Shown here piece after piece: positions 35,901 through 63,015 of a stretch of 64,000 nucleotides of DNA. Origin of the DNA: Ylistrum balloti (lineage: Eukaryota). Position 1 is the first letter of the stretch; every line of letters starts with the position of its first letter. The notes under the pieces were generated by a model. It had not been told where the DNA came from, made no database searches, and saw nothing but the letters and a program-made list of their open reading frames with translations. The position numbers and the translations under genes were made by a program. The stretch lies in assembly GCF_031769215.1 (NCBI RefSeq), contig NW_026781970.1, positions 992,001 through 1,056,000 of the forward strand. Direction: 5' to 3'.

Positions 35901-36049
35901 AAAAATATGATGATGAACTTTAAAGTTCTGGCACACAGTGGTACATCACTTCCTTGAAGAGTATTTAACTCTACCATATATGGATCTTGAGAAAGAGTTT
36001 CAATTCATTTATTGCACAAAGAAACAAGAATGCAATAGACACGGGAAGA

Positions 36050-36435: not shown

Positions 36436-36439
36436 TGAC

Positions 36440-38985: not shown

Positions 38986-39049
38986 GGTGTCTGTCGTATG
39001 TTGAGCCAATTACACGTAACTTGTGTGATATTAAGTAAATGAGCAAGAT

Positions 39050-39400: not shown

Positions 39401-42400
39401 TATATAAGATATATGGTCTCTAACTTATGGCCAAGTGTTTATATGCCAATCGATTGGCAGTTTACTAAATTGAATTTGTATTCTATCGAAACTACGGTTA
39501 TCATTTCACAACAATCTTTAGTTTTTGAAAATGTTACAGACTCATATTTGACAAATGGCAACTCTCAAACAAATTAATTACAGATTACTATAAACAAATT
39601 GTTTAAGCGGTTACTGTCAGCCAGAGTCAGACCGGCAGCTTCTTCATTTTCTATTCTTAATATTTTAGTATTTTGTCCCTGAGTTTTACCACTGCCGCAC
39701 ACGACATTGTCTTTTCCATATCTAACCAAATTCATCCTTTATCACTCTAACTGACATGAGTTCGTTCGTAATAATAGGTTCAAAAACATATACACTTAAA
39801 CATTCCTAAACTACCATATACATACAACCCACAGTAATACAATAGTTGTGTACATACCTTTTTATTTAGTTAATGTATATTTGAATAATGACAAGGAATT
39901 TACCGAAGTCCTGAAACGTCTCACCTGACAAATGAGCACGTTTGTCACAATTAAACATGACATGCTTGGCCGAATCGGTTGGATGTCTGCTTAATACTTG
40001 ATCTGATGCACGTTTTAAGTACTAATGATATCATCAACTCTTACTATTAAGGTTTCGTGTAAAAATGTTTTAACAAATCCAGAAACGTGTTAATTATGTA
40101 TCATTGAGAACACACAAAGAAGTGCACGAATTTCACGTACAAAATCAAATGAGTAATTTGACTGAGCAACACCGTGGGGATGACACAAGGACACAGGTGA
40201 ATGTTGAAGGTGTGCACAGGTGAGATCATACATTTTAACATGCTCTAAGTTTAATTGTTGTGGTGTGTAACAGGGGCTTGTCAAATGAGGTATTACCTGT
40301 ACTTCTCCGCCTCTCGATACCGGTACCTGTTCATCATTATTGTGTGGAAATACGTCATTAAATTTAACATCGTCACTGCAAAATGCGGTAAAGACGTCGA
40401 GTAAAACTTACAACCATCATTTTTGAAAAGAAGAGATCATAAACTGATGTTTTAAAGAAGAGATCATAAATTGTTGTTAAGGATATAACTGTGTGTACTA
40501 CAATCAACCTCACGTGGACTGTGTAACATAAAATATATCCATGGTTTTCTAGGATACAATTAAGTGTTTCTTACTGTGGCAGAACATCATTAACTGTGAA
40601 GTACTACTACGAACCACAATGCCGGCCTGATGCTTCAACAAAAATCTGGGTAATGATGAATATTTATTATATAAACAAAGGCATATATCATGAAAAATAT
40701 GAACGACATCATGTCAAGAGATCTACATAAAGAAACAATCACTCAATCAAAACAAGGAACTGTCATATTTTTCTATATGAGTTTATACTGAATAAGGTAG
40801 GTGGTATAACAAACTCCAATATTTACAATCGTAATGAAAATGGTCTAGAAAACTAATTAAAACATGGAGTATTTTGTGGTCATTATTCTATGTATCATTC
40901 TTTTGAGCAGTCCCCAGAACGGTCATCAGCCTTCGGTCAAATATGAACAGGACATTCGGAGCCATTAATTACAGTTAATTTAATAATTTATACAGCTTCC
41001 TGTCAAAGACATAAATAGAAAAATAAAGATAAGTAATTATCATTACAGCTAAGGATAATGACATTTTACATTAACATGTGCCTGTTTTAAAGGGAATATC
41101 AAATTTGATAATTGGCAATAAAGTAATCTAACAAAAATGTACTACGTGATTCGATGTAACACATATAGGATGGTCGTCCAAATAATCATGTACTCGTATA
41201 ATATATATAATATATTAAATTGTTTTTCTTGTGATAGCAAAACTTCTTCAAGGCGATAAGGAGGCATAATTGGTTAATGTTATATAAACATTCCTTGGCA
41301 AGACTGGGTACAATTGATCGTTTTCGTCCTTCAAGTTGTTTTAAATAAAACATGATGCCTGTAGATTTACCATCCCCGGACAATATATATACCATATACA
41401 TTTGTCAAGGAAGGTAAATAAGCACAGACGACATGTGTGTATTATACATGTAAAATTATTATCATTATCCGTGCGCAAATTCCTTTATGTCATTGTTATA
41501 TAAACATATGTACATCCTCTGTATTACATGTTGGATTTACTGTATAAATAATAGGATCTGGCGACGAAATTGTTTTAACACGACAGTTTTAGTCACAGGC
41601 CGTCTGGTACATGGTGAATATTAATAATCCTTTTGTATTTTGCATTGATCGTTTCATATTAAGTTAATACATTAGCTGGGATATATAACATGCTTTTGAT
41701 ACAATGCAATTAATAACATTTAGTACCTATCAAACCGAATAAAGAGAAATTGTAGATAATTTAAGACTGGAACCAAGAACTAAATGAAATATACTTTACC
41801 ACATTTCTGAGCAATGTTTATTAAATCATTCATGCTTAATTAATTCCTTCATCAGTACTACAACAATTAATAGTTTATATACATGTGTAATGCTGATGTT
41901 TTAAGAATATTTGATTTTACAAATCACTTTAGTTTCAGTGTTATTTACATGTATATGTGATCATACGATCAATTACTACCACTGACTTCAATATCACTGC
42001 TGGAAGAATTTTAGTTTTCTTGAAATGTTTAGTATCTGTCATATTCTAGATCACTTATCTTAACTTAATAAGTGTCATGGAAAATATGTTTATATTAAAA
42101 AGAATTGCAAATTTGAAATAAGATGGTGAAATAATGCGCAAATCGGAGACAGAAAATGGAAAAAAGTTCCATGAACACCTACAACAATTGGGGGCAAACC
42201 AATGTATTTCGAAATGTTTCCGTGATCGGGTTAGAACGACTAGTATTTTTTGGCCTATAAATGAATTCGTAATAGTAAACGCCACCTTATAGTTCGGCTA
42301 ACATGTTTAGGTCTACCTCAGATTCCCGTTGTGATCAGTTCAAACCATACTTATACCATACTCAGATCGAACAATCACTGTTTGAAAAGTTACCTATTCA

Positions 42401-45400
42401 AGTATGTTTTGTTTTGATATTATCTAGCCATTGCTATTCATATGTTTCATTTTTATTTTAGAAGAGATAACTACACTCATGTACATTATAGACAAAATTG
42501 GTCTGAAAACCCTAAGATGACATTACAATTTAATGTACATTTATCACAAATATTTCAGTTTTCGTTTACTAGGAAGATAAAATAATGATATTAAGTTATT
42601 TTACTAAGGTAAAATAAGAGGTCCTCAGTTTTTAAAAGTTCTGCGTTCCGTCTACAATATTTTGAAATCATTGTAGGATGCTTATGATTATATTTGGAAT
42701 GTATCGACAAAATTAATCTCCTTAAAGTGAGTATGATTAATAACGTAAGTATAAAAATGGTTTAAATTCCCACCGAACGATATTTTAGAATCAAATGATA
42801 TTTCCCTGAGAGGGAACATAAATAATAATCTTACCTAGTCATAACATCGTAAACCAGCGAATCACTGACAGGGACTCTTGTACATAAAACCCTTTTGTTG
42901 CACTCTTTGTGATTCATTCCAGGAAGCCGAATATCTTATAGAAGACTGTTTATTTTTATATCTACATTTGATAAATCTGTTCATACCTCTACCACATAGC
43001 ACAATATGTGCGACATTATCATACATTAACATTAACACAAATGCTATATTGGAGTCTGTGGTAAATAATTAATTAGCATGATAATGCCGTTATGGTGGAC
43101 GATTAGAACTATGTTTCCTCGTAGGCTGAAAGGCTATTTGTTATGGTTAGTACATGTGATTACGACATTGCTCTATTTCATTCAAATGACACAACATTAC
43201 GTTGGAAACCTTCTTTCAAAATATTTTTTCTTAATTAAAGTAGTAATTGCTCAATTATATTTTTTACAACTTTTACAAAAATTCTTATAATTGCTGACCT
43301 TCATGTTTCAAAGATATATGAAACATACATGTGTTAAACATGGTATCATGATTACGAAAAGATCATTAAGTTCTTTGCCCAGCTTGTGCGATTTATCCAG
43401 AGTAGAAAGTAATCCTTTGCTATATAAAAAGGAACAGAAAAGATAATAAATGATAAATCAAGATAAATCGTGTTTCTCAGTCGATTGTAAAGTGCTGGGG
43501 ACCATGCCTGCATCTACAGTAGTAATGTAAATCTTCATTGACCGATGGTCAAACAGTTAGGAGCCGAATACAAATGTTAACAAGTCACGTTTGACAAACG
43601 TAGATGAACCTACATGACCTACCAGCACACAGTTTCCGTTTTGACCGCAGCAGTCATGCAAAACAAACACTGACTTTTGACACACACAAGTGTCTTACAA
43701 AACGGAGTAAACCTAATGCCCAGATATATCTAGCGCCGTCTATCCAATAAGAAAAGGATTTTTTTTGCCTATGAATGCCATATGATATTAGTATCCTAAT
43801 ACGAAAGATGTCATTCGAAATGCTTTTTGTCCTTCAGACGTTTAAACGACTTCATTAAGTATAGTACACTTGGTTAATTGTAGCAGTGTGTTACTCTTGC
43901 ATAGTTTCTTATACGTGAGTTACCTCCAATCCGTACAATGATTTGATGAAACTATAATGAAACTCTCTCTACACCACACTAGGTACTTGTTAATTATAAG
44001 AGAGACTTTACTCTCGTTTTAATATATCGCTGTGACATATTCTTCAGTCATCATACATCTTCCGTTCTCAGCAGTGTGTTTAATTATATGTGCACTGCAA
44101 GTTAAAAGAAAAAAGTGTTCGTAAGTCTTCATAATACGGCAGTAATTCATTGTTATTAGCACCCGCACACATTGTTACTTATGTAATGATGTATAACAGT
44201 CCTGTGAACTGTTTCTATATTTAACCTGAGTAACAAAAGTCGCGCTAAATCCTTGTTAGAACAAATAACTAAAAAAAAACAAAAAGAAAACGAGAGGTTA
44301 GTTAATGACCATAGGATTAAATAGAAAAAACTGTGAGTAATTATCTAGATAACATTTCTACTCGTACCTTCCAAACGTTTTAGTCACCCTCATTCATCAA
44401 AAATTGCTTACGTACCGATATGGATGGCAAAACAAACAAAATGACGTCATTAAATAAGAGGAATTTAACTGGTTTGTAAAATTAGACATGTTGAATAAGA
44501 TATATCACGGAATTGTGTATTATGTATTTATTTAGTATTAAAGATATTATGAAGATGCGATAAGGTAAATAAGATACAAGATTACTATTATCTGTTTCAA
44601 TGTGTTGCTTTAAGTTAATGCATCCAGCAAAGCTGCTTTTAATAATTTCATATATCCACAATATTGCTTTTAAATTTACCCTAGTTGTTACACATAGGAA
44701 CAAGTTCTGTCAGGTGCTTGTGTGCTGATCATGTTATTGTTCTAATGCTTCTCCTCGCATATAAACATATGTCCTCCAGATACATATAAAGTTGTATTTT
44801 TCTTTAGCACATTGATGTTTAAAATTCCATACGGTGATATATTTATATTGTGCGTTTTTTCCAGTTGTCGTGCGCTACATCATTGTTTGTAAAACATGCA
44901 TAATTCCATATTAATCAATGTTGTATATGCCTTATAAGTAACTCCTTTTGCTTTGGATCAAGATTATTTGTTTATATCAATTAGTATCTAATACCCAAAC
45001 TGGTAAAGATATTTAATCATGTCCATACTTATCCATCATTCTATTATAAATGATCTTAATAGATAAATACCTAACATCAATACTAGGTATAAACAATACG
45101 TATTGTGTAAAACAATATATGTTTTGTATAATTTTGACCTGTTATATATCTCATCAATAATACATTTTATGCATAATAAGAGACATCAAAGTACGTGTTC
45201 CATTATATTGTAACATGAAATGTATGCGGCGGTTTCAAACACGTGTCGTTTAATATCTAAAAGGTAGCGTAATAAAAATATTAATTGGCTTTACACAATG
45301 CGATAAGGGTTCTGCAATATAGAAATTTCAAGCCGATTAAAGACAAGTGTGATTTGTAGATCGTGACCCTCACATTTCGATGTATCTGATAGAGCAAAAA

Positions 45401-48400
45401 TGCGGTGAAGATTAACTACCAACTGATGTTTCAGGACACAGCTAATTAATATTTTCGTATGATAATAGTATTTTGATATTTTATAATATCAGGCGCTATA
45501 GCATGCAGGTTACAAAGAGCCTTTAAGAGTAAGTTGTATTACGAATAGAAACAAGTAGAATGGTTAATGTAAAGTTAATCATCTGGATAACGTTTCCTGT
45601 ATTTTTAGTGGGTGGGTGTGGGGGCAAGTTTTTGGTTATTTCATTTTCATTAAGTTTTAGTTTTTTATGTTTATTTATTTTTTTGATTCATTCCTTCATT
45701 TTGTGCGATCTACATGTTTAACGAACGTTTGTAATGAAGAGATATAATTCTCTAAATAGGTTTAAGACATAAGATGAGGAATTACACAGACACGGTAACT
45801 CGAATATCTACTCATATGCACTTGATACAGATCGATATCAATTAGATAACAAGTCCAAAATGCCCAGAAGAAAACAACCAAAAGTTCCGGATGGATTCTG
45901 TAATTAGTATCTTTATCTCTTGAACTCCTGAATATTAAATATTTTATTTTTCACATAATTTTTAAACACCACTGTGGTCTTTGATCATTCAATTGTTTAA
46001 AATCCATTTCATGAACACCCTACTGAATTTCTTATATTTACGAATTTAAGCACATGTTTACATATTGTATAGGCATTAGGGCGTTTGGGGAGATAAATAT
46101 GACGTCACTGTACTGACCACCAGATCGGCTGGTTCCCATCACCAAATGACAGCGAATATTTACGCTTCGTTTTATTCCAATTGTATTGTTCTTTGTTTCA
46201 TATTATTTTATGCATTTTTTACGCTCCATTTCTGTTGTTTTTCATACCAAAGGTAAATATTATTCAGACACTTTCGTTTATACAGTACGTGCCTCTATCG
46301 TTCAGTACTGTTTTATTCATAAATCTATCCATCAACGTGACGTCTGCCTTAAAACGTTCTTATATATAACTTTATGATATCAACACGAAATCTTCATTAT
46401 ACACAAATGGGCATAGACAAACACAGTAAATTGCTGTCCATCTGAGTCAATGATACCATTGAGCCATTTTATGTTTTTCTATTATGATAAATCTACTTTT
46501 GCTGTTGTTTTTGTTGTCTTCACAAATATGTTTTGGTTGTAAATCAAAGCAACTTCTTAATAAAAAACAGCAATCATTCGTTTATTAACCGTTATCGCCT
46601 ATGTCACGAGCTACTAACTTCACATATCCAAATCAATGCTGGGTTATTCACATTGTTCTTTATCTGGAAAAGTTGAAAATGTCGTCATTCTGTTATTTTA
46701 TGAAATAACTTCCCATTTGTAGATAATATTGAGGTATTCTAATAAAGGCGCACATTTGGTATTTGAGGTCAATACTTAGCTTCAGCAATATTCGCCAAAA
46801 ACGAAATTTTGTTTTAATTTCCATTTCTTCGTAACTACGAAATTTGGATTTGAAATTTTAAAGGAATTTTAATAAATGCTGTTTTTTATAATTTGTATTT
46901 TAACAAGTGCGAAATTCAGTGATTCAACTTTTCGTAAATAATTAACATCTTAAAAAGCAATGAGTGATGACATTTTATGTTTTAAAAAGTCAATTTTACA
47001 AAAGCAGCTTCTTAATGTCAGCTTATATTAAAATAATTATCATATAGATCAAGATAACAAAATATATAATATCCTCTATCTTATCTATCCCTTGATGACC
47101 TGCTCTCGCCGACCTTTAGACAAACGTACATGTAACAAACAGTCTGCAACCAGATATGAACGACGGTGGGTTTTTTATCGAGAGACCTAAGGCCTAAGAT
47201 ACGCACTAGTCCATAGTGCCCGGTAATATATGTCGCTCATTAAATGATCACCTTGTATCGCCCGCGGGTCAAACGGTAGCATCTACTAATGATAGGTGTC
47301 AAAGCATGTACGAACATCTCTAATACACACAGAAAGGACATCACAACAGGTAACAGCATGATGTCATTAAATATATATTATATTGCTTAGAATAGGTTGA
47401 TACGCATCAATATCCAATGGGTTTATAGATATATATGGTAAACGCATAGTGCCAATATATATACATAATTATACACATTGGCAAAACCTGAATATACGTT
47501 AAAACAAGAACAGAAGTGTCAAAAGACAATTAATGAAACAAAGAGAAAAATTTGTCTATTGTGTAGAATTTTATCAATAAGACAATAAATTGATTTTGAT
47601 GATATGCATCTGATATCTCAAACAAACTAACAGCCGCCCTAACCCAGCAGCTTCTACACTTCACATTGCTCTTCAGGTCTAGTTTTGTTATCTTTTTGTC
47701 TGGTCGAAAACAAGGATGAAAAAATGTTTTAAGGATGAAAGCCAATATTTTTATTTCTGTGTTTGCTCACTCCAAGTGAATGTGTTATACAATCTTATTC
47801 AGTGTGTGTATAATATAGTTATTTTTTAACTACATGAAGAACTGAGGATGGCATTGCGTTTACTTACATAAGAAAGTGAAAACTATAAGAATGGGGCGTA
47901 TTATATAGGTAAATATGCATTTGTGTTATATTTGGCGTTTCATTCAGTAGTTGGGTTCAGTATCATATAACTTAAGCTAATTGGATAAAATATGTTTTGA
48001 AAATATAGTTCCTGTTTTAATCTGTCATGGATCATTACATCTGTCAAATACAAAGGAAACCATTACAATGTGCCTTTTTCCCTCTGTGGTGTGCCCGCTA
48101 ATAAGTTAGTCGGAGGACTACAGGAAATGGGATATATTTATTGTTTCTACATGACTAGAAGGTTGATCTTTGCATAGTTCTGATATAGCACTAATGTAGT
48201 GACGAATCTCGAACCTCCTACCTTACTGTCATGTAACTAAGGTTAATGCTGGCTGCTTCTCACGTATACAAATCTGACATGACGGATATGCCTGTCATCA
48301 GTGGGACATATATGTGTGGCTTTGTTCTGGTGACGTTAACGCATTTGTCAATCATAGATGAACGATCGATTTTCTTTTTTGATCTTATAATTATGTTAAT

Positions 48401-49666
48401 AAGATTTTCAATCGTAAACCCGCAGATTCGATAACTTCTGTTTAACGTACGAACGTTTTTAGCCTTTGCCTGCATGAAAACCGCTTTCAGACTGGCATCA
48501 ATAGTTTATTTCATACTCTGATGACTGTCCGTGTTAATTCAATTATATAAAGTAAAAATAAGATAGAATGTGTCATTGATACTGTAACATCCTTACACCA
48601 TGCTTTGTGTTAATTGTTAAGTTAAGTGTTAATTCCTTACCAATCGTGACACTTTAACAGGAGCTTCTATAGTTCAATAAGTTAGAAACGTTGACCTATG
48701 CAATCTCAGAGAAAGAGATGTGCGGGGTGCGTGGTTCGACGCTCCCTCACCCTAGTGGTTAATGTTTATTAGAAAACTGAGAAACGGAAACGGTCCAGTG
48801 TTTGTTAACATGGGTGTATACGGATGGTGTTCAGTTAGGTAGTCAACAGCTCCAAAAAGAACCTACCTCAAAAGGACCTGTTGTTCACGGGGCGATAAAA
48901 TCAGCAAGTATTCTGACTAATTTGTCGACCTTTTCAGATTTCGATTTAATCAAATTGACCCGGTTGATTCACAATCACTTAATAAATTGTTAGGTTATCT
49001 ATCTGCGCATCACTTGGATTGATGAAATCCTTCTAAAAAATCTGGAAAAATCACAAAAGTATTTTCAATGCTATTATTTATCCATTTTTTAATTACGTAT
49101 GCTTTAAACAGGATAAACTAAATATACACCCATACTCTTCCGAACTGTGTTATCGTAACAGACATATATTAGATAAATATATGCAATATTTCATAAACAT
49201 GGTATTTTCTTTATTTACTTTTGAATAAATTTATTTCCCAAATTTTTGTGAAGTGATGCAGTATTGATAAGCATTTTTTTTACTTTGATAAAGAAAACAG
49301 CTGGTAACCTTTATAGTTACATCACGAGAGACATTTGAAGACATGGACATTTATTATGTTGCTAGTTTTGAGAATATATGTTCTACGCCCATAAGAAACA
49401 TAACTATGTCTGTGTTTACAATGACCCTAGCAAACACGAAGCAGAATGTAATTACTAAACGAAAGCAATTAATCAAATGAAATTGTTAACCTACTTTAAG
49501 GGTGTTGTTTTCAATAATTGAAATTACTTGTCGTAACCCACCCATATTTAAAACGCCGGTTTCAAAAAAGTATGTTGTACATAGAGAGAATATGTATTTT
49601 GACTCTCTATTCGATAAACTAATCAAGGCACTTTTCACCTGTCAGGCATCCATCAGGTAAAACGAC

Positions 49667-49694
49667 TATAAAACGCATGTAAGAAATCACGTGA
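49667..49694 (+). promoter_or_regulatory. Candidate gene 2 core promoter (TATAAAA and palindromic E-box TCACGTGA)
   Basis: About 400 bp upstream of the ATG, followed by donor-like gtaagc/gtaagg sites and an acceptor at 50020, suggesting a non-coding first exon; speculative. Confidence 0.25.
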
Positions 49695-50077
49695 CAAGGC
49701 CAAAAGTGTGAACAAGGTAAGCACCGCCCAACCTGGCTCTCAGAACGGAGAGTGAAGTCGTTTGCTCGACACGACAAAATGGCTTCCACTTGCCTATCCT
49801 CATTTCCACCTGTTTGCCATATCCAGGAATGAAAACATATTCTTGGAGAAAGTAAGGCAGTTTTGCGGTAGGAGATTTCATGGATGTAACTAGGATTTTC
49901 ATCTTTGTTTTTATCTTTGGTAGATAATTGAAAATCTTCCGCGAGTGATTTGGATTTCATATTGTGATATGGATGTATAGTTATCCCGAAGGTTGAATTA
50001 CTGGATTGGTATATGTTCAGAACCTGACATCTCACTTTCAGTTACAATGGTCAACCTATAGGATTACAACATTCACA

Positions 50078-50170
50078 ATGAGACCAGATGATCTGAGTAA
50101 CCTCGAGGTTCTGGATGAGAATACCATTGTCCAAGCACTGAGAGGTAGATTCCATAAAGATAAATATTAT
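50078..50170 (+). CDS. Gene 2 exon 1 ([31 protein letters not shown])
   Basis: DDL..L...L..RF motif; gtaagt donor; a 5' extension is not excluded. Confidence 0.88.
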
Positions 50171-53100
50171 GTAAGTAAAAACACATATGGAAATTTACTT
50201 TTGTCATTAATTAGATTTTCATATAAATAAGTAACGAAAAGTTGTACAAAAGTATACATCAGTTCAAATAATTTTATGTTATATATTTTTTTAGATAAAG
50301 TAAAGTAGTAAATCTTTGTTAGATGTTCTTTAGATAAATGTATTTTTTATAATACTATCAACAATTTGAAAGGAATGTGTATATAATCGGTGTTGCAACT
50401 GACATATAAGAAAGGATTCTTATCACAAACTTTTCGACTGTTTGTTTCTTTGTGAGTTTAATCATAAGACATCTTTCCAAGAGTAAAAAACAAGGTTACC
50501 AATTAACTGTAAAAATCATTTCTTAATTTGAAGTGAATTCTTGGCGGAATGTTATTCTCACGGTTTGTCTATAGCCATGAAAAATAAAGAAAGTTTCTAC
50601 ACAACGAATATATTTCATAGTATACATAATTCTAACGATATATTGTGATTCAATGATTACAAATTGTATATCTCTTTTACAGACATATATAGGAGATATT
50701 CTAGTTGCTGTGAACCCATGTAAACCTCTCAATCTTTTCGAGAAAACGGTAAGATATATATTGTCTCTATCTTATATATAAAAAATCAGGGTGAGAATAT
50801 ATTGTATTGTATTGTTATGAATGTTTATAATAGATTCATACAGACAATTGTTATAATATTCATATTAAACTAACTTTTTTAAAACTATATCTAATAGATT
50901 TTGTTTAATCTTTTCACTACAAGCACTTGCTATAACAACTCTTGTCTGACTGTTAGGTACTTAACACCGTAATATTTTGCTAAAATGTTCTTGTTTGACT
51001 GTTCACTATTTCGTACAACAAAATATTATTAAAACTGTTCTTATTTGACTAGTTCACTATTCCTAACAACACACTATTACTAATACTGTTCTTGTTTGAC
51101 TGTTCACTATTCCTAACAACAACAAAATTACTAAAACTGTTCTTGTTTGATTAGTTCACTATTCCTAACAACAACAGAATTACTAAAACTGTTCTTGTTT
51201 GTTCACTATTCCTAACAACACACTATTACTAAAACTGTTCTTGTTTGACTGTTCATTATTCCTAACAACACACTATTACTAAAACTGTTCTTGTTTGACT
51301 GTTCATTATTCCTAACAACACACTATTACTAAAACTGTTCTTGTTTGACTGTTCACTATTCCTAACAACACACTATTACTAATACTGTTCTTGTTTGACT
51401 ATTCACTATTCCTAACAACACACTATTACTAAAACCGTTCTTGGTTGACTGTTCATTATTCCTAACAACACACTATTACTAATACTGTTCTTGTTTGACT
51501 GTTCATTCCTAACAACACACTATTCTAAAACTAACAACAACACACTATCACTAATACTGTTCTTTTTGACTGTTCATTATTCCTAACAACACACTATTAC
51601 TAAAACTGCTCTTTTTGACTGTTCATTATTCCTAACAACACACTATTACTAATACTGTTCTTGTTTGACTGTTCACTATTCCTAACAACACACTATTACT
51701 AAAACTGTTCTTGTTTGACTGTTCATTGTTCCTAACAACACACTATTACTAATACTGCTCTTGTTTGACTGTTCACTATTCCTAACAACACACTATTACT
51801 AAAACTGCTCTTTTTGATTGTTCATTATTCCTAACAACACACTATTACTAAAACTGTTCTTTTTGACTAGTTCACTATTCCTAACAACAACAAAATTACT
51901 AAAACTGTTCTTTTTGACTAGTTCACTATTCCTAACAACAACAAAATTACTAATACTGTTCTTGTTTGACTGTTCCTTATTCCTAACAACACACTATTAC
52001 TAATACTGTTCTTGTTTAACTAGTTCACTAGTCCTCACCACCAAGAATCTACTGCTTTTTTTACTTTTCCTCACACGTTTGCTATAAATGTTCTTGTTTG
52101 TCTGTTTAATACTCTTCAACAAAAAACTTTTATAATAACTTTCAATTTTACTTTTCGCTAATCATCACTGTAAAAATTGATATAAATTGTCAAGCGATCA
52201 GGTATCCTCCATCCACTGCTAGCTAGTTTATCTTCTTATCAACACAATAAACATATCGTTTTAATGAGATTATCATCCTAGAAGGAAGGAATGTTCTATT
52301 TGAATTAATGTTATTCTAGACAAATGTAATAAAGATGAAATATTATGCACATAATTAATGTTGTTAAGCCGTTTGGAAGTGCTCTAGTGCCTTTATAACT
52401 GTGTGTTACTAATATATCCTGTATATGCTGCTTTACAGAAAGATTGTTTTACTTTCCTCAATGCAAAACGTGATATTAAAGTATCTTCTTATTACCTGTA
52501 ATTGATGATTTATTTTGGTCTTGAGATAACGAATATAGGCCACGCCTGGTATCTCATCCATTTGTATACTGTTACATAAATTTATCAAAATAAATTGATT
52601 AATTTTGATGTCTTTTAAGTGACAAGACTGTAAAGATTTACATTTGATCAACGATGCAGTCTACATAAATTTACTTGTGACTGTGAGATATTCATTATAA
52701 TATATAGAAGTAGAGCCAAAGGGTTGGTCTGTACAGAGAAACGTAGCATTTAAAGGTCATTACCAGGTTTTCAATGATATAAATTATAAATATTTAAAAA
52801 CAATAAAAGACAGTGTCTATAAATCGCTGCAATAAGTTCAGTTTTTTCAAGTGTGATAAATGCCCGTAACATCATTGACAATGTAACTTTAGACTTAGAT
52901 TATAAGGAAATCGAAATGCGCCCTCTTTGCTGTTTTGGCAATATAACTACATTAACCATGGCTGAAGATATTAAGTATTGTGTCTATTTCAGAACCATGA
53001 GGAGTACGAGAATCTGTTGGTCCGAGCCGAGAAGCCCCCTCATCTCTTTTGGGTGGCTGACCACGCGTACAGGGCATTACTGGAGACCAGTAGGAATCAG

Positions 53101-56100
53101 TGTATCCTGGTTAGTGGGGAATCCGGGTCTGGAAAGACGGAAAGTACAAAGTACATGATACAACACCTCATGAGGATCAGTCCTAGTAATGACAAACACC
53201 TACTCGATAAAATTGTACAGGTAATGCTGACCTTAACATCAAATCTGTGCATAACAACTTTACAGGACAACTCAGGCCAACTGTCAATGTATACACAGAG
53301 ACTTGAATTTTATTTTAAATTTAAGCATTATCCTTATTGTATTTCCCCCATCTGGTGCAAGATTTTTATTTCAACACACACATTTGGAGACTGATGTATT
53401 TTAAAACAGCATTGTTCATTACAAGTTTGTCGCTTTTACTTGATAAACACATCCATGTCGTGGACTAATGTCGAGTTACTATAGAAGTGTTCATTCTATG
53501 AATAACACGGAAAAGTTTTGCAATGTTTGTAAAACAGCTTCTGATGATCTAAAAAAGATATTTACCCCGTTTAGTATGAATTGGAAATAAATTAAAGATG
53601 CTTTATTCATCATATAACTACCCTGTTATTAGTGTAATAATACTTATTACATGAATAGATTACGTGAGTGGTAAACAAAATTTTTCATTCATTTCCATTT
53701 CATATGAGATTTATGAAGCTCGATACAAATTTTTCATTTTACCTTGACAGGGGTTAGGTAAAATGAAAAAAAAAATCTAGGACTCGTTTCATAATTGTGA
53801 TATAACTGGCAAGTTATGTAATTATTCCAATACCAATGCTTAATGCCTACATAATATACGTTCAACATTAACAGGTGAAATATGTATTAACACTTAATCT
53901 AAAGAAAAAAATGTTTAAAGTGATAAATTCGCTGTCACTATAACACTATCTTAATCTATGCTCATTTTACACTGATTCACTGGAAATGTCAATTTAGAAA
54001 TATTAATCTATTATAAAACATTCAATAACAATAAATTTCTTTTTGACAAGTGAAGTGTGATAAAGTACTTAATTTTTGCTTATGTTTGCAAATCTACCAC
54101 ATAAATGTTACTTCTTTGATAAAAAGCTCGTGACATTGTTTTAGTTAACTTTCTACTTACCATGTAGATATATTTTGTAGCAACTTTTTTCTAAATATGA
54201 TTATGAACTATAATTGATATACTGATTAACTCGATCTTCGTTAGTATATGTATTCATGTAGGTTAGCTATTTATCAATCAATCGAGACGTTTCCATTAGA
54301 GTACTGTTTTTATCCTATTCGTCTTTTTGATATTGAGCAGCACAGCCTGTCAGTTGGTTTATAGGTTTCGTATTTCTTTGAAATTGATATTCCTCTGTTT
54401 AATGGCTCGACGCTTCTCTTCAATATTTATGTAATTAATATCACACTCAATTCATGTCGGACCTGTTGTTTAAATTAAATGAATTATTTCGACCGCAACG
54501 TGCAAATAAGACATTAAATGTTTGAACAGGATGACAGATTATGACAATAACAAACAAACTAGATGTTAGACCATCACAACATAATTAATGTTTGGAATAT
54601 TTATACATAATGTGTTTTTTATTGTTAAATATGTCGTTAATGTAACATTAACACAATTACTTTGAGTAGTTATTGATGTTGTCGCTGTAAAGGGTACCAA
54701 TTTTGGGGAATATTTTTTTTCTATAATTTAATCGCCGTTTTCCCTGCATCCGCTGCAGCTTATTGTAACTGTTACTGTAAAAGTTTATATTTTCATGGAA
54801 TACTATTTTTCAATATTTTCGAAGATTTGACAAAGCCACAAAATCAAATGAAACTATGAAATTTGACCGGCTTAATAATAAACTTTACATTGATATTAAG
54901 CATGCGTAAAAATCTCATTTTTTGAGAAAACTATATAAGTGATTTGAAAAATAAATGTTTCGTCCGTTTGATTTATTAAATAGCTAGACAACACTATTTC
55001 TTGTTAAGGGTACTTCGCGAGTGAACTAGATTTTTGTTGATCGGTTTTATTGTCTTTTCTGTCTATTATCGAGATTTACTGAATCTTCGGATTAATAACA
55101 CCAAACGTTATCATATTTGTTTCTGATTTCATTCATCCTTTATATCACACAGTTTTGTTACTTATGTTAGCTCAATAGTCATTTTGTCGATGTGGTAATA
55201 TATCAATTAGGTGTTCAGAGGTGATCTGAGATATCCTATATATCTAAATGCTTATTTGTAATTTTCCAGTCACTTACCAAGAGTTCTGTTGTATATATAA
55301 TTTCTCTGGTTTAAAGTGAACATGCTGGGTGATAAGACGTATACTGTTTGATTAGAGACACTAAACATGTTCCGCCGGAAGGCATAATTTGTTATATATG
55401 TCTTCTTATGTTACCTGCTGTCACTGTCAATTTTTCACCCAAATGAACAATTCAAATTCCTTTGAGTTATCGCTCTTAGTAACATTTCGCAATCTGCATC
55501 ATGGAGAGAAATGTGATGAAAATAAATGAACAGGAGAACTATATAAAAATTAGAAGTAAATTCAAATGATAGATACGAAGAGATCTAATTTGATAATCAA
55601 ACACCGATTTATAAATATAGATAAAAAATAGATTTGGTCATTATATGACACTACATATATTTAGGAATCAAATAAGATTTAACGATCACTTGATGGATGG
55701 TTGATTTCAAAGCAATTAAGGGATAGTATTTCTGTTTAAGTTAACAGTTGTGTTTAGGACTCCCATTTCAAATTTCAGTGTTTGTACATCTTTTCAACTT
55801 ATCAGACATAAGAAAATCACTGAACGTAACAAAAAGCTGTTTGAACTCATTAGTTGACAATACTGTATCTAATTGGAAATCGTGGTAAAAAGTAAAAAGT
55901 GTTTTGCCTTTTCTACAATGTTTATACAGTCCATATGTAAAATAGAAATAATGTTAGTCTCGAAGTTATACTGAATACATGACTGATGTACAAAGATCAA
56001 TAGATTCAACAAGATATATTGATTAGGTTTCCCATTGATTTTAAGTGCAAATAATTGTTAACCATACTTAAGATATCAGTTATTGACATATTTATATACA

Positions 56101-59100
56101 GTTAATCCAATACTTATTGTATATGTTATGTAAGTACAAACATTTCTGTCCTTATGATAAATTGGAACAACTTTACAAGAAATAGTTTAGAATTATCTCC
56201 TGACCTAGCTAAGGACAGTAATCCATAGCCACGCGCCATCGGCTCTGACATTTAGCCCCAAGGTTTTGTTCCTATAATAACCTGTCCCGAGGGTGACAGG
56301 TCTTTCATTACCAGCGACAGAGTTTCGTCAGAATTTCTTTGTCTATGACTAAAGCCTGGTCTAATCGAAATCATTATTACCTGTGACCGGACGGTCCATC
56401 AAGCCTGTCTAAATATATGGCATAACCGTGTTTAGTCACTACTCACATCATGTATATATGCAAAGTGCATTTTTTTATTGTACATTAAGGACCAGTATGA
56501 TGATATACATCCTGATGTGTACTGTGTATAAACTGGACGATGACCGTGTACATGATTAGCATAAGTCATAGAAAGCAATGAACATGTCTACACAAATTAT
56601 GTGCACATTGCATATTTCGCGTATTTATACAAACTGCTTTTTTTACTGCTTTTTACTGACCGTTCTTTGACAGCCCGGCACACTTTTTCCGTATTCACAA
56701 GATCTTGGCAAATGATAATGGCAAATTATTAGTTGTCCGAGTCAAATATCAACATTACATTTACAACCTATAAAAACGAACAAATCATTACACATTTTCC
56801 AAGTATTTGAAAGAAAACAATGAAATGGAACATATATATCTTCTAACAGTAACAAATAAATGTTTTCTATACGATATGTTTTTGTATAATTTTTGTATAT
56901 TTTATATTTATTTAAAGAATGAAATCAATTATACATATATGCATATTTTTACTGCATGTACATTATTACAATCTTAAGTCATTTCGATATTACTCATCAG
57001 TTTGATCATATCAAATACAGTGCTACGACTCATATTTGCATCAAAAACTGCAATACATATATTGATAAAGGAAGACGACAAGCAAACGAATTATTTCCAT
57101 GGAGACTCTTCGAAATGTACCAAGAGAATAATACCAACACTTGCTAATTGACAATGCCTAACGAGTAAATCCAAGTAATGTCATGTTGTCAATAAAGGAA
57201 ACATTTCATGTCAACGAAATTATAATGCTGACCTTCATATTTCAAAAAAATATTAATATGGTGACAGTTTCAGTTGACATAAAATCACTCATCAATTATG
57301 AAAACAATGGTTGTTTTATTTGTTTGTTTTTTATTGCTCAGAAGATTGTTAGAGAAGTTATCCTTAGAATACATTTATGTACGTACATAACATATAGCAT
57401 TTCGAGTGCGAGACAAAAACTGATATAATTTAATTCAATACCTCTATTTAAGATGTTTTGAATAATGCGCAATCGCTTTGGATGCTTTCTTGGCAGGGGT
57501 TTTTTTTTAGACAAACCTGTTAATTGATTGATCAACATTTCAGGTTAATCCCTTACTGGAAGCCTTTGGAAACGCAGCCACAGTTATCAACGGAAATTCT
57601 AGTCGATTTGGAAAATTCATAGAACTTCACTATACCGAAGAAGGGTCATTGCTTGGAGGTAAGATATCAAAAAATTACATACGTCTAAGTCCCCCCCCCC
57701 CCTTTGATTTATCTGTGAAAATGCAGCTTACAGACAAGAAACGTTTTGTTTTGTTTTTATATTTGAATTTTCGTAGTTTTTTTTAATCTATGGAACAGCC
57801 GGCACCTTACGGAATACCAAAAAAGGTATTTCAAAAAGGTGGGAAAGGTTGTCAAAGTTGATATGTACGGAAGTATATCACTTTTGTTGGTGGGGGGAAT
57901 ATAGAGAATACTGGCAATGTAGATATATCTACATAAAAACTGTGTCAAATATTTAGTCATTCCATTCATTCCTTCCATTCCATAACTATGACAATATTTC
58001 TACATATCAACTTTTAAAGACTGTTTTAGAGGTTTCAGATTCACGCTTCTTCTGCAAAAATCTTGAAGCAACAATGATCATTTTGCGCGGAAGATATAAA
58101 ATGGACTACAATTTCCTGTAGTAATCTTATTTTTATTTCATATATTCTTCGCGATGTTTTCCCCATCCTCACATAAAGCTCGATAATTATTCAATTCGAG
58201 TAAGGCCGTCCTTTGAGATGACTTTTATTATCAAGGGACCATAAGAAAACCAATTATTACAAAACCACTACCTCATTAAATAATGCATCATGGAAAAGCA
58301 ACCTATAAAAAGATGTTTATAAAAGTCAACAACATACGCCAAATTTATATATATCGTCAAAGATGGAGATAAATACAGTATGTAAGTTTGGCTTAAAACT
58401 GGAAATGATGATCATTGCTCCGACTGCCTGAATAGATATGGCGCTGCTTATTTATTCCCCCCCCCCCTTTTTTTCTGGATATTGAGTATCAAAATATCGT
58501 CCAAACAACTGACGGTGAGAACGTTAGAGCCCTTAAACAAAAACTTAGCCCCTAGCGGGTGTAGAGGCAGTGTAAGGTGTTCATGCTATACTTACATATA
58601 TGATATACAATACTAGAGTGTGTCAATGCATAAAATCAGCATTGCGCATAGCTTAAATTGATCATCATAAATTATTTCTGTTGCAATTTTGACCAGGTTG
58701 AAATTAATTTGACAGGATTATGAGAGGTTCACGTTATCATGTTGTTGTTTGCATATCATAATTTGACACTATATAAAAAAAACATAAAGAGATTCATTCG
58801 GAATTTACGATATTCTTAAAAATGTTTTCAAGGGAAGGTAAAATACACGTACAAACATTTGCATTTCTATTGAAACCGAAATGCATCATAACTAATAACT
58901 ATCTTGCATTTAATCTTCTTTTATATACCATCAAAGAGACTAAACATTTTATAGACAAGATCAAGAAATCTAGATCGGTATATAGTTAAAATTTTGTGCA
59001 GGTGATGGAAATTTTGCTATTTGAACATGGTTGAGCTTCTATCAAACCAATACTGCAAAGAAATTTGTTATTCATTGCATCAACAATATATCTTTTATGC

Positions 59101-62100
59101 ATTTTTGAAACAGCCATAGGTGTACAACAATTTGCAGGTCATTAATAGTTATTAGATGTACAAGGCATTACTGAATGAGTCATATCGGAGAAATTTAATT
59201 TCCAAAGGTCATCAAATTAATGAAGATATATGATCTTGAAATACTGCACCACCTCGTGTTTAACTCTGTTACAGAAATGCACTAGTAATAACTTAATAGA
59301 TAACAGAAATTTAACATTATACAACCTTGTTGAAGCTTTTTTGATTCGATACTTCTGTCATCGTTTCACTAGGGGAAAGGTCAACCTTAATCATGATCAA
59401 TCTATGTCACAACATTATCGATACGACTGTCATTAAGGACATTACGTGATTGTGTTTAACAACTGATTAAAACTGAAGCCTCCTATACGGTAATTAACTT
59501 TTCCAAAAATGGTGTGTCATGTTTTAAATGCCGTGTACCACATTATGTAAATCATCATAATAGCATACAAAAAGTTAACAACAGAAATTTAGAATAGCAT
59601 TTTATCATAAACATTACTAATTGTATTAAAGTGGCAGTTTAGAATATTTTGAAAATAAAACGCTTCTAGGTATAATGGGAAATGTTTATTAAACAGAATG
59701 AGATAGCAGTCTTACACACACTAGCATACAAAAACTTGACATATTTGTATTCTATATAAAGACGATCAATAAAATCAATTAAGAAAAATTAAACAGATAT
59801 TGTGAAGGTTTTGCTCAATGGTTCTCTACATGTACTTACTTTTTTTCTCCAGCTAAGATTGATGACTATATATTAGAGAAGTCCCGAGTAGTATATCGGA
59901 ATAAAGGCGAGAAGAACTTCCATGTTTTCTACTCTCTTTTTGCTGGTATGTCAAGGGATCGACTCTTATACTACTTCCTGGAGGATCCCGATTGTCATAG
60001 GTAAGATTTAAGAAGATATAAAAAAGAAGATGTCAAATTACAGCAAAAGCTTTGATAGTTGTAATTTTCATTTTTATTAGAAAATTAATATTGTTTATTC
60101 AGATGTTTTTAACGGCGCATCTGTTGTTTATATAATCAATGTATTTTCTACAGAATCATGCGGGATGGTGACCCAACATGTGGGGTATTTCGAGATTCGG
60201 ATGAGTTTCAGAACTACAAAATCATGTTTGGAGAACTAACAGTCATAATGTCCCACATAGGGTTTTCAGATGAGGTACGTTGCAATCACCATCAGCAAAT
60301 GAAAAATATATATTATTCTGGAAGTATGCACACTTTAGACAAATAACTGTTACATTCAATCCGAGAGACACACGAAAACCTATAAATCAAAAGGTCTTTT
60401 CTTGTTATTTATGTTCTGTTCTTAATCTTTCTGCTATATCTTTTTGATAACTGATTAAGGAATATTTCAATATAACCTAAAATTAAACCAAATGTCGACA
60501 AGCTGCAGAAGCTATTCTCATTAATACAATTAAACAATTGTACTTGCAGCACATTTCGGTAATTTTCCTCGTTCTGGCCTCCGTACTACACTTGGCGAAC
60601 ATAGTGTTTATGCCGTGTGAAGAAACTGATGGTGTGACCGTAGCGGACGAATACCCTCTTCACGCAGTCGCCAAACTTTTGGGTATAGAAGATGAAGTGG
60701 AACTCACAGAGGCTCTCATCTCAAATGTCAATTACATCAAAGGTGAATTAAATTATATCGGGTAGATAAAACGCATGACTATAAACATAAATTGGCCAAC
60801 ATTTCCACAGATAATCAACAGAATGCTTAGTCGATTTCGGTCCTTTTTCAATAGCTTCGACTACAACTACAACATGAGAGCATATATTTGTCTTTAAAGT
60901 TTTAGATTGAAAGGGATTGCCAAGAGATATCTAGAGAAAATTTGGAGGTAAGAGGTATTGTAAAGAAAAATTCAACGAACCATGTTTGCTTTCAGGGGAA
61001 CGAATTCAGTCCTGGAAAAATCTTCGGGAAGCAAACGACAGCCGTGATGCTCTGGTTAAAGACTTGTACTCTAGGTTGTTTGGCTGGATTGTTGGCCAGG
61101 TGAACAGAAAATTGTGGATACAGCGGGATGGCAAGACATCAAAGTAAGTCAATAGATCATGAATGAACTTACCATAAAATACATCTTATACTGAGGGTGG
61201 TGTATCGTATTCTGGTATCGTCATTGATGATATTTAAATATCTATCATTCTCTGGTTGTTTGGTTTGGTTGATTCTTCGAAGCGATAAAAAGTAGATATG
61301 TTACACACAAATAGTTAGAAACATTGTATATAATGAGAACTAACTGAAAGGCTGTAACATTTTGTAGTTTCACAAGAGGGCTTACCGTCAGTCTTCTGGA
61401 CATGTCTGGGTTTGAGAATTTCACCAACAACACGTTTGATCAGTTTCTCATCAACATCTCCAACGAAAAGTTACAGCAGTACTTCATGGACTACATTTTC
61501 CCGCGGGAACGCCGTGACTACGAAATCGAGGGTATCGAGTGGAGAGACATTGTATACCACTCAAATGATGACGTTCTCGATCTTGTATTTAGGGTAAGCA
61601 TGTCTTCCACTTCTGTAAAAATATATTTAAACATCAATTTGTGAAATAAAAACGTCTCGTGCGACAATAACAATGGCTGTGAATAGAGTATGGATTCGGA
61701 GAGAATTTAAAACATGCCTGATACGTTTTGAATGAAATTATTATATGTGGATTTCTTTAACATCAATATAACTTTTTGCAGAGACCAGACGGTGTTCTTG
61801 CTTTACTGGATGAAGAATCTATTTTTCCGAAATCAACTGATGTCTCTCTCGTACAGAAACTAAATCAGTACTGTAGGGATACGCATAGATATGTTAAGTC
61901 CTTGGGAGAGCGGACAAGCTTCGGGATCCGCCACTACTCCGAACAGGTACGTCTTAAGTCGTAGAAAAATATCGTATTTAATGAGTCATTACGTTGATCA
62001 GAATACCATTCGCGTACTATTAATTTAATTCTGAATTGGTATTGAAAGGTGCTATTTTCTTGTCTTTTGTACAGCGAATGATAAAAACATTTTGAACTAT

Positions 62101-62448
62101 TTACATGTTAATTCTACCATTGGGACAATAACTTTGTCAGTTACTTAAAGTTTAACAATATCAAATTCAAGTGTTGGAAAAGACCACCTGATCATTTACA
62201 TTCTTGAAAATCTTAATATTCCCCACCTGTATAACACAAATGTCTTCTTTTGAAGTAATAGCTTTGATTTCTCAATGACTAAAGTATCAATGTCCTACAT
62301 TACAGGTGATGTACGACGCCGAGGGATTCCTAGAGAGAAACAGAGACACACTTAGTATCGATCTTGTCACCTGTCTCCTCAACAGCAATAATGATTTCAT
62401 CAAAGATTTGTTCACAGCATCTATGTCCCCAACTGGTACCATATCCGA
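50078..62448 (+). CDS. Gene 2: myosin motor domain gene, probable tandem myosin-chitin synthase paralog; 3' part lies beyond the window (span includes introns)
   Basis: Eleven phase-consistent exons with [27 protein letters not shown]. It shares intron positions and phases, several exact exon lengths (66, 115, 148, 226 nt), the NPC motif and a start directly at the motor with gene 1. The CHS part is not visible, so that identity is inferred. Confidence 0.85.
50683..50748 (+). CDS. Gene 2 exon 2 ([22 protein letters not shown])
   Basis: Motif match; 66 nt like gene 1 exon 2. Confidence 0.92.
50960..52040. repeat. Minisatellite, 50 bp unit (ctgttcttgtttgactgttcactattcctaacaacacactattactaaaa), roughly 20 copies, in gene 2 intron 2
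   Basis: Period of 50 visible at 51301 and 51351. Confidence 0.92.
52993..53220 (+). CDS. Gene 2 exon 3 ([10 protein letters not shown]-loop GESGSGKTE)
   Basis: P-loop; phase 0-0. Confidence 0.94.
57544..57658 (+). CDS. Gene 2 exon 4 ([25 protein letters not shown])
   Basis: Switch I; missed by the ORF track; 115 nt like gene 1. Confidence 0.94.
59853..60000 (+). CDS. Gene 2 exon 5 (LEKSRVV...[13 protein letters not shown])
   Basis: Motif match; 148 nt like gene 1. Confidence 0.93.
60154..60274 (+). CDS. Gene 2 exon 6 (IMRDGD...IGFSDE)
   Basis: Phase 2-0; overlaps track ORF 60158. Confidence 0.9.
60550..60742 (+). CDS. Gene 2 exon 7 ([12 protein letters not shown]...[11 protein letters not shown])
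   Basis: Equivalent to gene 1 exons 7 plus 8 without the intervening intron. Confidence 0.92.
60996..61143 (+). CDS. Gene 2 exon 8 (GERI...[17 protein letters not shown])
   Basis: RDAL.K.LY.RLF.WIV motif; missed by the ORF track. Confidence 0.93.
61368..61593 (+). CDS. Gene 2 exon 9 (switch II DMSGFE, relay helix)
   Basis: Motif match; 226 nt. Confidence 0.94.
61782..61946 (+). CDS. Gene 2 exon 10 ([13 protein letters not shown]...FGIRHYSEQ)
   Basis: LLDEES.FPK motif; phase 0-0. Confidence 0.93.
62306..62448 (+). CDS. Gene 2 exon 11 ([16 protein letters not shown]...SMSPTGTIS)
   Basis: V.Y...GFL..NRD motif; first gtaagt donor at 62449, phase 2 as in gene 1. Confidence 0.92.
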
Positions 62449-63015
62449 GTAAGTAAAGTTAAAAACATCATAGCATAGCATCTATGTCCCCAACTGGTAC
62501 CATATCCGAGTTAGTACAGTTAAAAACATCATAGCATAGCATCCTTTTCCCCAACTGGTACCATATCCGAGAAAGTAGAGTTAAAGACATCATATTAAAA
62601 CATCCATGTCCCCAACTGGTACCATATCCGAGTTAGTACAGTTAAAACATCATATCACAGCATCTATGTCCCCAACTGGTACCGTATCCGAGTAAGTACA
62701 GTTAAAGACATCATATTAAAACATCCATGTCCCCAACTGGTACCATGTCCTAGTGAGTAAAATTAAAAACATCATATCACAGCATCCATGTCCCTAACTG
62801 GTACCATATCCGAGAATGTAGATCATCATATTAAAACATCCATGTCCCCAACTGGTACCATATCCGAGTAAGTACAGTTAAAAACATCATAGCATAGCAT
62901 CCATGCCCCCACTGGTACCATGTCCGAGTGAGTACAGTTAAAAACATCATATCACAGCATCCATGTCCCCAACTGGTACCATGTCCGAGTGAGTACAGTT
63001 AAAAACATCATATCT
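62416..63015 (+). repeat. 61 bp tandem repeat, 10 copies, made of the last 33 nt of gene 2 exon 11 plus donor site and intron start
   Basis: Ten ggtacc cores about 55-61 bp apart; the first copy is the exon end itself. Confidence 0.93.

Follow-up and report, generated by a model that had tools for sequence, protein, structure and literature searches.

A myosin-chitin synthase gene of the scallop Ylistrum balloti and its anciently diverged tandem paralog

Introduction

Mollusc shells mineralise on a chitin scaffold that myosin-linked chitin synthases deposit. A comparable arrangement exists in the fungal class XVII (class V and VII chitin synthases), in which an N-terminal myosin motor is joined to a membrane chitin synthase, a fusion thought to tie secretion to actin. 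The fungal fusion is independent, involves a different myosin lineage and carries Cyt-b5 and DEK_C domains (PMC3942024, PMC3942036). The founding myosin-chitin synthase of bivalve shell formation is Ar-CS1 of Atrina rigida (UniProt Q288C6), presented where Weiss et al. 2006 is cited (PMC3942024, PMC5379566) as a chitin synthase that bears a myosin domain. Several lophotrochozoan clades of chitin synthases linked to a myosin motor (groups A-C), and the tandem Lottia genes CS2-4, were described by Zakrzewski et al. 2014 (PMC3942024), who dated the duplication of the paralogs to early mollusc evolution.

The window analysed here is a 64,000-nt stretch of the Ylistrum balloti genome (contig NW_026781970.1, positions 992,001 to 1,056,000). 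It holds a complete myosin-chitin synthase gene (gene 1) followed by the motor exons of a second gene (gene 2), and it is free of N runs; no stretch resembling human DNA was encountered. Like the Lottia CS2-4 array, it carries deeply diverged motor-bearing paralogs in tandem.

Results

Motor exons of gene 2

Eleven exons of gene 2 lie in the window and every intron is GT-AG (Table 1). The spliced exons gave a stop-free frame of 548 motor residues, out of about 720 in the motor, which matched residues 1-548 of XP_060063734.1 (Ylistrum balloti LOC132544184, 2270 aa; gene length 27.8 kb) with 100% identity and no gaps. Pfam analysis showed that these exons covered the Myosin_head profile to position 531 of 679, and the P-loop, switch I and switch II were all present. 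The motor starts at once, with Myosin_head from residue 4, and Pfam analysis of the full XP_060063734.1 gave no N-terminal kinase or SH3-like domain. No exon past exon 11 was found in a search of 62449-64000, because intron 11 extends beyond the window end.

Table 1. Features of the two-gene locus (window coordinates)
Feature	Position	Strand	Basis
Gene 1, upstream paralog, complete myosin-chitin synthase	2891..29231	+	Pfam Myosin_head, ChitinSynthase_IV_N, Chitin_synth_2 on exons
Gene 1-gene 2 spacer, 20.85 kb	29232..50077		Coordinates
130-bp satellite in spacer	36484-38972		TRF
Gene 2 exon 1	50078..50170	+	ATG at 50078, donor GTAAGT phase 0; equals residues 1-31 of XP_060063734.1 exactly
Gene 2 exon 2 (VNPC motif)	50683..50748	+	Intron position common to gene 1
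50-bp minisatellite in gene 2 intron 2	50980..52035		TRF
Gene 2 exon 3 (P-loop GESGSGKT)	52993..53220	+	Pfam Myosin_head E = 1.6e-20; boundaries from sequence
Gene 2 exon 4 (switch motif)	57544..57658	+	Splice sites and motif
Gene 2 exon 5	59853..60000	+	Phase-1 acceptor, phase-2 donor, like gene 1
Gene 2 exon 6	60154..60274	+	Splice sites, comparison with gene 1
Gene 2 exon 7 (gene 1 counterpart split by extra intron)	60550..60742	+	Pfam, splice sites
Gene 2 exon 8	60996..61143	+	Splice sites, comparison with gene 1
Gene 2 exon 9 (switch II, DMSGFE)	61368..61593	+	Pfam Myosin_head E = 1.9e-17
Gene 2 exon 10	61782..61946	+	Pfam E = 1.3e-09
Gene 2 exon 11, last within window	62306..62448	+	Pfam; 62448 adjoins GT donor
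61-bp minisatellite, 10 copies, in intron 11	62412..63014		TRF and sequence

Intactness and selection

The 61-bp minisatellite of intron 11 repeats the end of exon 11 together with its splice donor, an arrangement that could have crippled gene 2 and left a decaying duplicate, either a motor-only relic or a pseudogene. However, the first repeat copy retains the true donor, and read-through meets a stop at once. The 11-exon frame is intact with canonical splice sites throughout, and the 2270-residue frame runs on downstream. The dN/dS of the gene 2 motor was 0.022 and 0.032 against two other scallops, and that of the gene 1 motor was 0.063; these values point to strong purifying selection on both motors. 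Among the 40 differences listed for the DNA contigs of a second individual, none was exonic, with exons accounting for about 28% of that span. Decay of gene 2 is accordingly very improbable. The minisatellite was not present in the orthologous intron of Pecten or Mizuhopecten.

The chitin synthase half of gene 2

The chitin synthase half was read beyond the window, from the public copy of the same contig, which was identical to window positions 40078-64000 at 23,923 of 23,923 bases. Exon 12 was located at window-equivalent 64536, 536 nt beyond the window end. The exon series was colinear from motor to chitin synthase and matched the RefSeq model exactly. The exons for CATMWHET (residue 1343 of XP_060063734.1), EDR (1651), QRRRW (1688) and SWGTRE (1870) mapped downstream on the contig. 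EDR and QRRRW are among the motifs by which the GT2 domain binds donor, acceptor and product.

Pfam analysis of XP_060063734.1 revealed Myosin_head at 4-722 (E = 1.7e-185) and Chitin_synth_2 at 1533-1770 (E = 2.9e-30); ChitinSynthase_IV_N at 881-1263 reached 22.5 bits, slightly below the 23.5-bit cutoff. There was no IQ, MH2, SH2 or Pkinase hit and no conventional myosin tail. The predicted product of gene 2 consists of an N-terminal myosin motor, a putative multi-pass membrane region and a family-2 glycosyltransferase chitin synthase domain. The preliminary description had taken the second motor for a motor-coupled chitin synthase and had pointed to CATMWHET, EDR and QRRRW exons farther 3′ on the contig, with IQ motifs and a conventional tail as the contrary outcome. 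Chitin_synth_2 and the motif exons bear it out: all three motifs were found, with SWGTRE in addition, and neither IQ motifs nor a conventional tail occurred in XP_060063734.1.

The RefSeq model is computational, and the 2270-residue protein might be an annotation chimera of a motor gene and a separate downstream chitin synthase gene. This has a negligible chance of being correct: the same colinear motor-synthase architecture was present in gene models of more than 15 mollusc species, the Atrina rigida chitin synthase entry, with its myosin domain, is described as cloned (PMC3942024, PMC5379566), and genes 1 and 2 align end to end, with 41% identity over 2212 residues.

Transcription of gene 2, with motor and synthase joined in one mRNA, is predicted from the RefSeq model and the orthologs. 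When sequencing runs were searched for the stretch, there was one match, to genomic DNA of the second individual, with no splice joints; the run was assigned to DNA of another individual because its contigs were colinear through introns.

Orthology and phylogeny

A first search with single exons against a 50%-clustered library returned mostly short fragments, and the full-length matches reached about 48% identity. In this set an MH2-tailed myosin (47.5%) and a motor-only fragment (48.3%) stood no farther from gene 2 than the nearest chitin synthase myosin (47.8%). Such matches were unable to tell the two kinds of tail, chitin synthase and MH2, apart, so a profile search of the 90%-clustered library was performed, the profile being the gene 2 exon peptides aligned to the Lottia third-paralog protein (P0033). 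True orthologs of gene 2 were recovered at 72-100% identity, all of them chitin synthase-tailed. Motor identity to gene 2 was 95% in Pecten, 94% in Mizuhopecten, 94% in Argopecten and 79% in Atrina Ar-CS1.

The maximum likelihood tree was built from a trimmed motor alignment, earlier MAFFT alignments having scattered some exon fragments. It showed a gene-2 clade (99/94) and a gene-1 clade (100/100) as sisters (100/97), each containing gastropods and bivalves. The chitin synthase motors and three rotifer motor-only heads formed a clade (100/99) apart from the MH2, SH2, kinase and ankyrin myosins. The preliminary description had named a phylogeny of the heads as a check and a non-chitin-synthase class as the contrary result; the gene 2 head fell among the chitin synthase myosins, next to the gene-1 clade.

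The ambiguous first search would fit an unconventional myosin in its own right, similar to class III, ending in MH2, SH2 or IQ and lacking any chitin synthase. This reading is refuted by the RefSeq identity, the tail domains and the contig extension with its chitin synthase exons in series; the chitin synthase tails of all the orthologs and the 100/99 split between the chitin synthase clade and the MH2 myosins also stand against it. The closest non-chitin-synthase motors, with 40-49% identity to gene 2, were those of class III, class XVI and the MH2-tailed 'myosin III-like' proteins, which are equipped with kinase, ankyrin, SH2, MH2 or IQ domains that gene 2 lacks. Two specific assignments were rejected in turn: a class III myosin (NinaC/MYO3), as the motor runs from residue 4 without Pkinase or IQ and the kinase myosins form a separate clade, and an MH2-tailed myosin (MH2 PF03166, about 1200-1300 residues), as MH2 is lacking and the tree separates the groups. 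Unlike fungal class XVII, the scallop head grouped with III/XVI-like myosins in this tree, which was built without class XVII sequences.

Within the mollusc family, gene 2 is placed as orthologous to Atrina rigida Ar-CS1. The two share an ortholog clade (79% identity over 548 motor residues), the same Pfam architecture (2286 aa in Ar-CS1 and 2270 aa in Ylistrum), and the VNPC, DMSGFE and chitin synthase motifs. Two features set Ylistrum gene 2 apart: its P-loop is GESGSGKT, whereas the clade otherwise has GESGAGKT, and it has the lineage-specific minisatellite at the exon 11 donor.

Comparison of the two genes

The preliminary description had reported a second plus-strand myosin head about 21 kb past gene 1, starting directly at the motor, sharing VNPC and D-x-S-GFE and 10 introns matched in position and phase with gene 1, in a visibly very different protein, and all of this was recovered. 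The motors were 45% identical (244 of 540 aligned residues). All 10 introns of gene 2, and the donor of intron 11, matched gene 1 in both alignment column and phase (phases 0,0,0,1,2,0,1,2,0,0,2 in both). An extra phase-1 intron in gene 1 (11856-12042) divides the counterpart of gene 2 exon 7. Gene 1 itself had about 85% identity over its whole length with Pecten maximus XP_033749200.1. Ten open frames of the spacer gave no Pfam match.

VNPC was present in both genes, as was the second motif (DMSGFE in gene 2, DISGFE in gene 1). These motifs were typical of both chitin synthase myosin clades, in contrast to VNP[F/Y] and DI[F/Y/A]GFE in other myosins. The P-loop of gene 1 was GDSGAGKT, GDSG being a signature of the gene-1 clade. 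The 'different motor chemistry' formerly ascribed to the pair was not supported and comes down to conservative P-loop changes.

Age and conservation of the tandem pair

The tandem duplication of genes 1 and 2 is placed by the motor tree before the gastropod-bivalve split, and the great age earlier proposed for it is upheld. A recent tandem duplication in the scallop lineage followed by fast divergence, as adjacency, shared strand and a common intron map might suggest, is rejected by the tree, in which each gene has its own gastropod and other-bivalve orthologs, by the AU test against a scallop-only clade (p = 7.8e-61, the group having been named after the tree was viewed) and by the same pair in Lottia.

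In Pecten maximus (LR736846.1) the pair was found at 13,423,400-13,456,348 and 13,480,469-13,509,196, both on the plus strand. In Lottia gigantea the gene-2 ortholog is preceded, at a distance of 8.3 kb and on the same strand, by a 2230-aa myosin-chitin synthase. Just the first exon of its N-terminus was recovered, which was uninformative, and the C-terminal exon was used for placement; on this last exon alone (552 residues, on a long branch) the protein fell inside the gene-1 clade (100/98). The Lottia array has orthologs of both Ylistrum genes, ordered and oriented alike, and the gene 1-then-gene 2 arrangement is kept in both Pecten and Lottia. The tandem cluster of the preliminary description, which had called for a synteny check in other bivalves, is seen in Pecten and also in a limpet. 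Spacer length is 21-24 kb in scallops versus 8.3 kb in Lottia. Upstream in Lottia there is also a third paralog (P0033), in head-to-head orientation; the Ylistrum window reaches only 2.9 kb above gene 1. At the gene-1-clade loci of Haliotis rubra and Potamilus no neighbouring gene was found within 10 kb.

Discussion

The best explanation of the locus as a whole, to which we give a probability of about 94%, is that the second motor comprises the first 11 exons of LOC132544184, an Ar-CS1 ortholog in ancient tandem with gene 1, whose product would carry out actin-coupled apical chitin extrusion as expected from its family. Shell-secreting mantle cells would carry the synthase in their apical membrane, where it would extrude chitin. 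Following the family literature, the cytoplasmic motor may bind cortical actin and thereby position or regulate the synthase; such binding would couple the cytoskeleton to the shell chitin scaffold.

The pair has held its order and orientation in limpets and scallops from before the gastropod-bivalve split. Its linkage may be functionally constrained, with regulatory elements shared in the spacer driving a coordinated two-synthase programme in which the motors are sub-specialised, and not a passive leftover of the tandem duplication, but we consider this doubtful. The sub-specialised-motor reading cites the roughly threefold faster evolution of gene 1 and its GDSGAGKT P-loop.

The gene 2 locus is real and intact, but its gene family and tandem layout have already been described in molluscs. 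The label 'unexplored system' given to it before does not apply, as knowledge of the family goes back to 2006 and the tandem paralogs of Lottia were reported in 2014 (PMC3942024). What the locus supplies is a fully resolved map of the 5′ exons, for the first half of each of two adjacent paralogs that diverged long ago, evidence of strong purifying selection on both motors, clade-specific motor signatures (VNPC, D[I/M]SGFE, and GDSG for the gene-1 clade) and evidence that the order and orientation of the pair are conserved between Lottia and scallops. The two genes lend themselves to a natural comparison of whether chitin deposition is tuned in different ways by different motors.

Exon structure of gene 2

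The window had a G+C content of about 33% and no N runs. Translation showed plus-strand open segments encoding myosin-head peptides at 50078-62448 (gene 2, downstream of its paralog, gene 1), and exon boundaries were set from splice signals and frame continuity. The 10 introns were all GT-AG, and the spliced frame of the 11 exons was stop-free and comprised 548 residues. The start codon and last donor coincided exactly with the limits proposed in the preliminary description. Every larger exon matched Myosin_head in Pfam, reaching position 531 of the 679 in the profile.

Coordinates of the features (window positions unless stated; all gene 2 exons were defined by splice signals and frame)
Feature	Position	Strand	Content
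Gene 1	2891-29231		Exons with Myosin_head, ChitinSynthase_IV_N, Chitin_synth_2
Gene 2 exon 1	50078-50170	+	Start codon
Gene 2 exon 2	50683-50748	+	
Gene 2 exon 3	52993-53220	+	
Gene 2 exon 4	57544-57658	+	
Gene 2 exon 5	59853-60000	+	
Gene 2 exon 6	60154-60274	+	
Gene 2 exon 7	60550-60742	+	
Gene 2 exon 8	60996-61143	+	
Gene 2 exon 9	61368-61593	+	
Gene 2 exon 10	61782-61946	+	
Gene 2 exon 11	62306-62448	+	Ends at final donor
Lottia gigantea row	KB202883.1 504214-574093 (loci L007, L008)	-, +, +	P0033, 2230-aa gene-1-type, gene-2-type P0180; spacers about 8 kb

A 50-bp minisatellite in intron 2 (50980-52035; about 21 copies in two adjoining arrays, about 90% matches) accounted for the strongly negative GC skew at 50001-52000. 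A 61-bp minisatellite (62412-63014; 10 copies, 84% matches) began within the last codons of exon 11, and each unit copied the end of exon 11 together with a donor of GTAAGT-like or GTGAGT-like sequence; read-through past the first donor met a stop immediately. Neither Pecten maximus nor Mizuhopecten yessoensis had this array in the orthologous intron, so it is specific to the Ylistrum lineage.

Comparison of gene 1 and gene 2

The coordinates of the two genes gave a spacer of 20.85 kb, in line with the roughly 21 kb first noted. The motors aligned colinearly with 45% identity (244/540 aligned residues), which bears out the remark that the proteins were very different. Each of the 10 gene-2 introns, and the intron-11 donor, matched a gene-1 intron in both alignment column and phase; the claim of shared introns held, with the nuance that gene 1 has one more (phase 1, 11856-12042), within the equivalent of gene-2 exon 7. 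VNPC and D-x-S-GFE were common to both genes, as described, and in the panel of relatives they marked the two chitin synthase myosin clades, other myosins having VNP[F/Y] and DI[F/Y/A]GFE. Apart from the extra intron, the original observation was confirmed.

The P-loop GESGAGKT is near-universal; that of gene 1 (exon 3, 8811-9041) was GDSGAGKT. Orthologs from Pecten and Haliotis rubra shared the Asp; the one from Potamilus had GESG. The spacer contained a 130-bp satellite (36484-38972; about 19 copies, higher-order periods of 267 and 397), which gave rise to a long series of spurious minus-strand open frames.

Identity of gene 2 and its chitin synthase half

A search with exon 3 against 1.84 billion cluster representatives returned mainly fragments. 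Myosin_head and Chitin_synth_2 were found in all six of the best full-length matches scanned (>2000 aa; P0011, P0023, P0033, P0044, P0049, and P0053); two shorter matches had the myosin head only, with IQ motifs in one of them. The best full-length chitin synthase match (48% over the 548 residues) was no closer than myosins with an MH2 (SMAD-type) tail, so a head of another myosin class was still open at that stage.

A profile of the gene-2 exon peptides aligned to a Lottia chitin synthase myosin (P0033), searched in a 90%-clustered library, recovered the scallop cluster. Gene 2 matched the first 548 residues of Ylistrum balloti XP_060063734.1 (2270 aa) at 100% with no gaps, and shared 94% identity with Mizuhopecten XP_021346055, 95% with Pecten maximus XP_033749882, 94% with Argopecten XP_069138132, and 79% with the Atrina rigida chitin synthase Q288C6 (Ar-CS1), of which it is an ortholog.

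The locus of XP_060063734.1 (GCA_031769215.1, JAUZWB010000564.1) was identical to window 40078-64000 at 23,923 of 23,923 bases, which puts the window at positions 992001-1056000 of this contig. The preliminary description had looked to the contig further 3' for CATMWHET, EDR, and QRRRW exons, and these were found: exon 12 begins at window-equivalent 64536, 536 nt past the window end, and exons from 12 onward encode these motifs and SWGTRE. Pfam placed Chitin_synth_2 at residues 1533-1770 of XP_060063734.1 and detected no IQ, kinase, MH2, or SH2 domain in it. The downstream chitin synthase exons and the lack of an IQ domain rule out a conventional myosin tail. The gene 2 model has the myosin-chitin synthase architecture, with the catalytic motifs of both halves.

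Phylogeny and selection

In a careful ML motor tree (59 rows), the chitin synthase heads formed one clade (100/99), apart from MH2-, SH2-, kinase-, and ankyrin-type myosins. Proteins of Pecten, Haliotis rubra, and Potamilus joined gene 1 (100/100), and the clade of gene 2 (99/94) contained a chiton protein, Haliotis and Lottia proteins, and 13 from bivalves, Ar-CS1 among them. The two clades were sisters (100/97), which places the gene-2 head with gene 1 and not with a non-chitin-synthase class. A duplication confined to scallops was rejected: forcing all scallop copies, a group chosen after the tree was seen, into one clade cost 95.7 log-likelihood units (p-AU = 7.8e-61). With gastropods and bivalves in each clade, the proposed old tandem duplication is upheld. 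The full-length Pecten paralogs were colinear end to end, with 41% identity over 2212 residues.

The MH2-tailed myosins (P0091 and relatives; about 1200-1300 aa, C-terminal MH2, annotated 'myosin-IIIb-like') were widespread, occurring in echinoderms, hemichordates, brachiopods, annelids, molluscs including scallops, and a sponge, and in the motor tree all fell outside the chitin synthase clade. Three bdelloid rotifer proteins (P0186, P0188, P0192; motor-only, about 650 aa) were nested within it and shared DMSGFE, one having a small-GTPase domain; these could be truncated gene models, or else chitin synthase myosins whose synthase was lost or replaced. A third myosin-chitin synthase paralog of Ylistrum balloti, P0044 (XP_060077330.1, on another contig; 2426 aa; switch I NSSRFAK and DIAGFE), was more distant.

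The frame and splice sites of gene 2 were intact, and its motor is under purifying selection. For the gene-2 motor, Nei-Gojobori dN/dS was 0.022 with Pecten and 0.032 with Mizuhopecten; the gene-1 motor gave 0.063, about three times as high. These values are rough, dS being near 1 in all three comparisons. Public-run contigs were colinear across the introns with about 1% differences, and so are DNA of another individual; exons accounted for about 28% of the span that these contigs covered, and no exon difference was seen among 40 of the 47 differences.

Synteny and putative function

In Pecten maximus (LR736846.1), the gene-1 ortholog (13,423,400-13,456,348) and gene-2 ortholog (13,480,469-13,509,196) were both on the plus strand, 24 kb apart, and a cyclophilin gene followed gene 2 in Pecten, Mizuhopecten, and Ylistrum. 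In Lottia gigantea, the 2230-aa myosin-chitin synthase shared its strand with the gene-2 ortholog and ended 8.3 kb upstream of it; the terminal exon of the 2230-aa gene, on which its placement is based, fell with P0011 of Haliotis in the gene-1 clade (100/98). P0033 was a third paralog, head to head and farther upstream. The same-strand order of gene 1 then gene 2 was thus found in both species.

These findings fit those of Zakrzewski et al. 2014 (PMC3942024), in whose work motor-linked chitin synthases fell into three clades, Lottia CS2-4 lay in tandem, molluscs had up to 10 paralogs, and duplication took place early in mollusc evolution. According to Sebé-Pedrós et al. 2014 (PMC3942036), the chitin synthase myosins of annelids and molluscs belong within the III-like/XVI group and are convergent with those of fungal class XVII.

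These results support the interpretation as a tandem myosin-chitin synthase pair. It is not an unexplored system: the family and this kind of arrangement are known, and gene 2 stands in RefSeq as 'uncharacterized protein'. What is added here is small: a precise exon map, motif signatures, estimates of selection, and the finding that order and orientation are conserved from Lottia to scallops. By analogy with the family literature (PMC3942024; PMC5379566, where Weiss 2006 and Suzuki 2007 are cited), the gene-2 product would be a membrane chitin synthase of the mantle epithelium, whose cytoplasmic motor would tie the synthase to cortical actin, and it would build the chitin framework for shell mineralisation. 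Gene 1 and gene 2 may plausibly divide their labour, both having been retained separately for about half a billion years.
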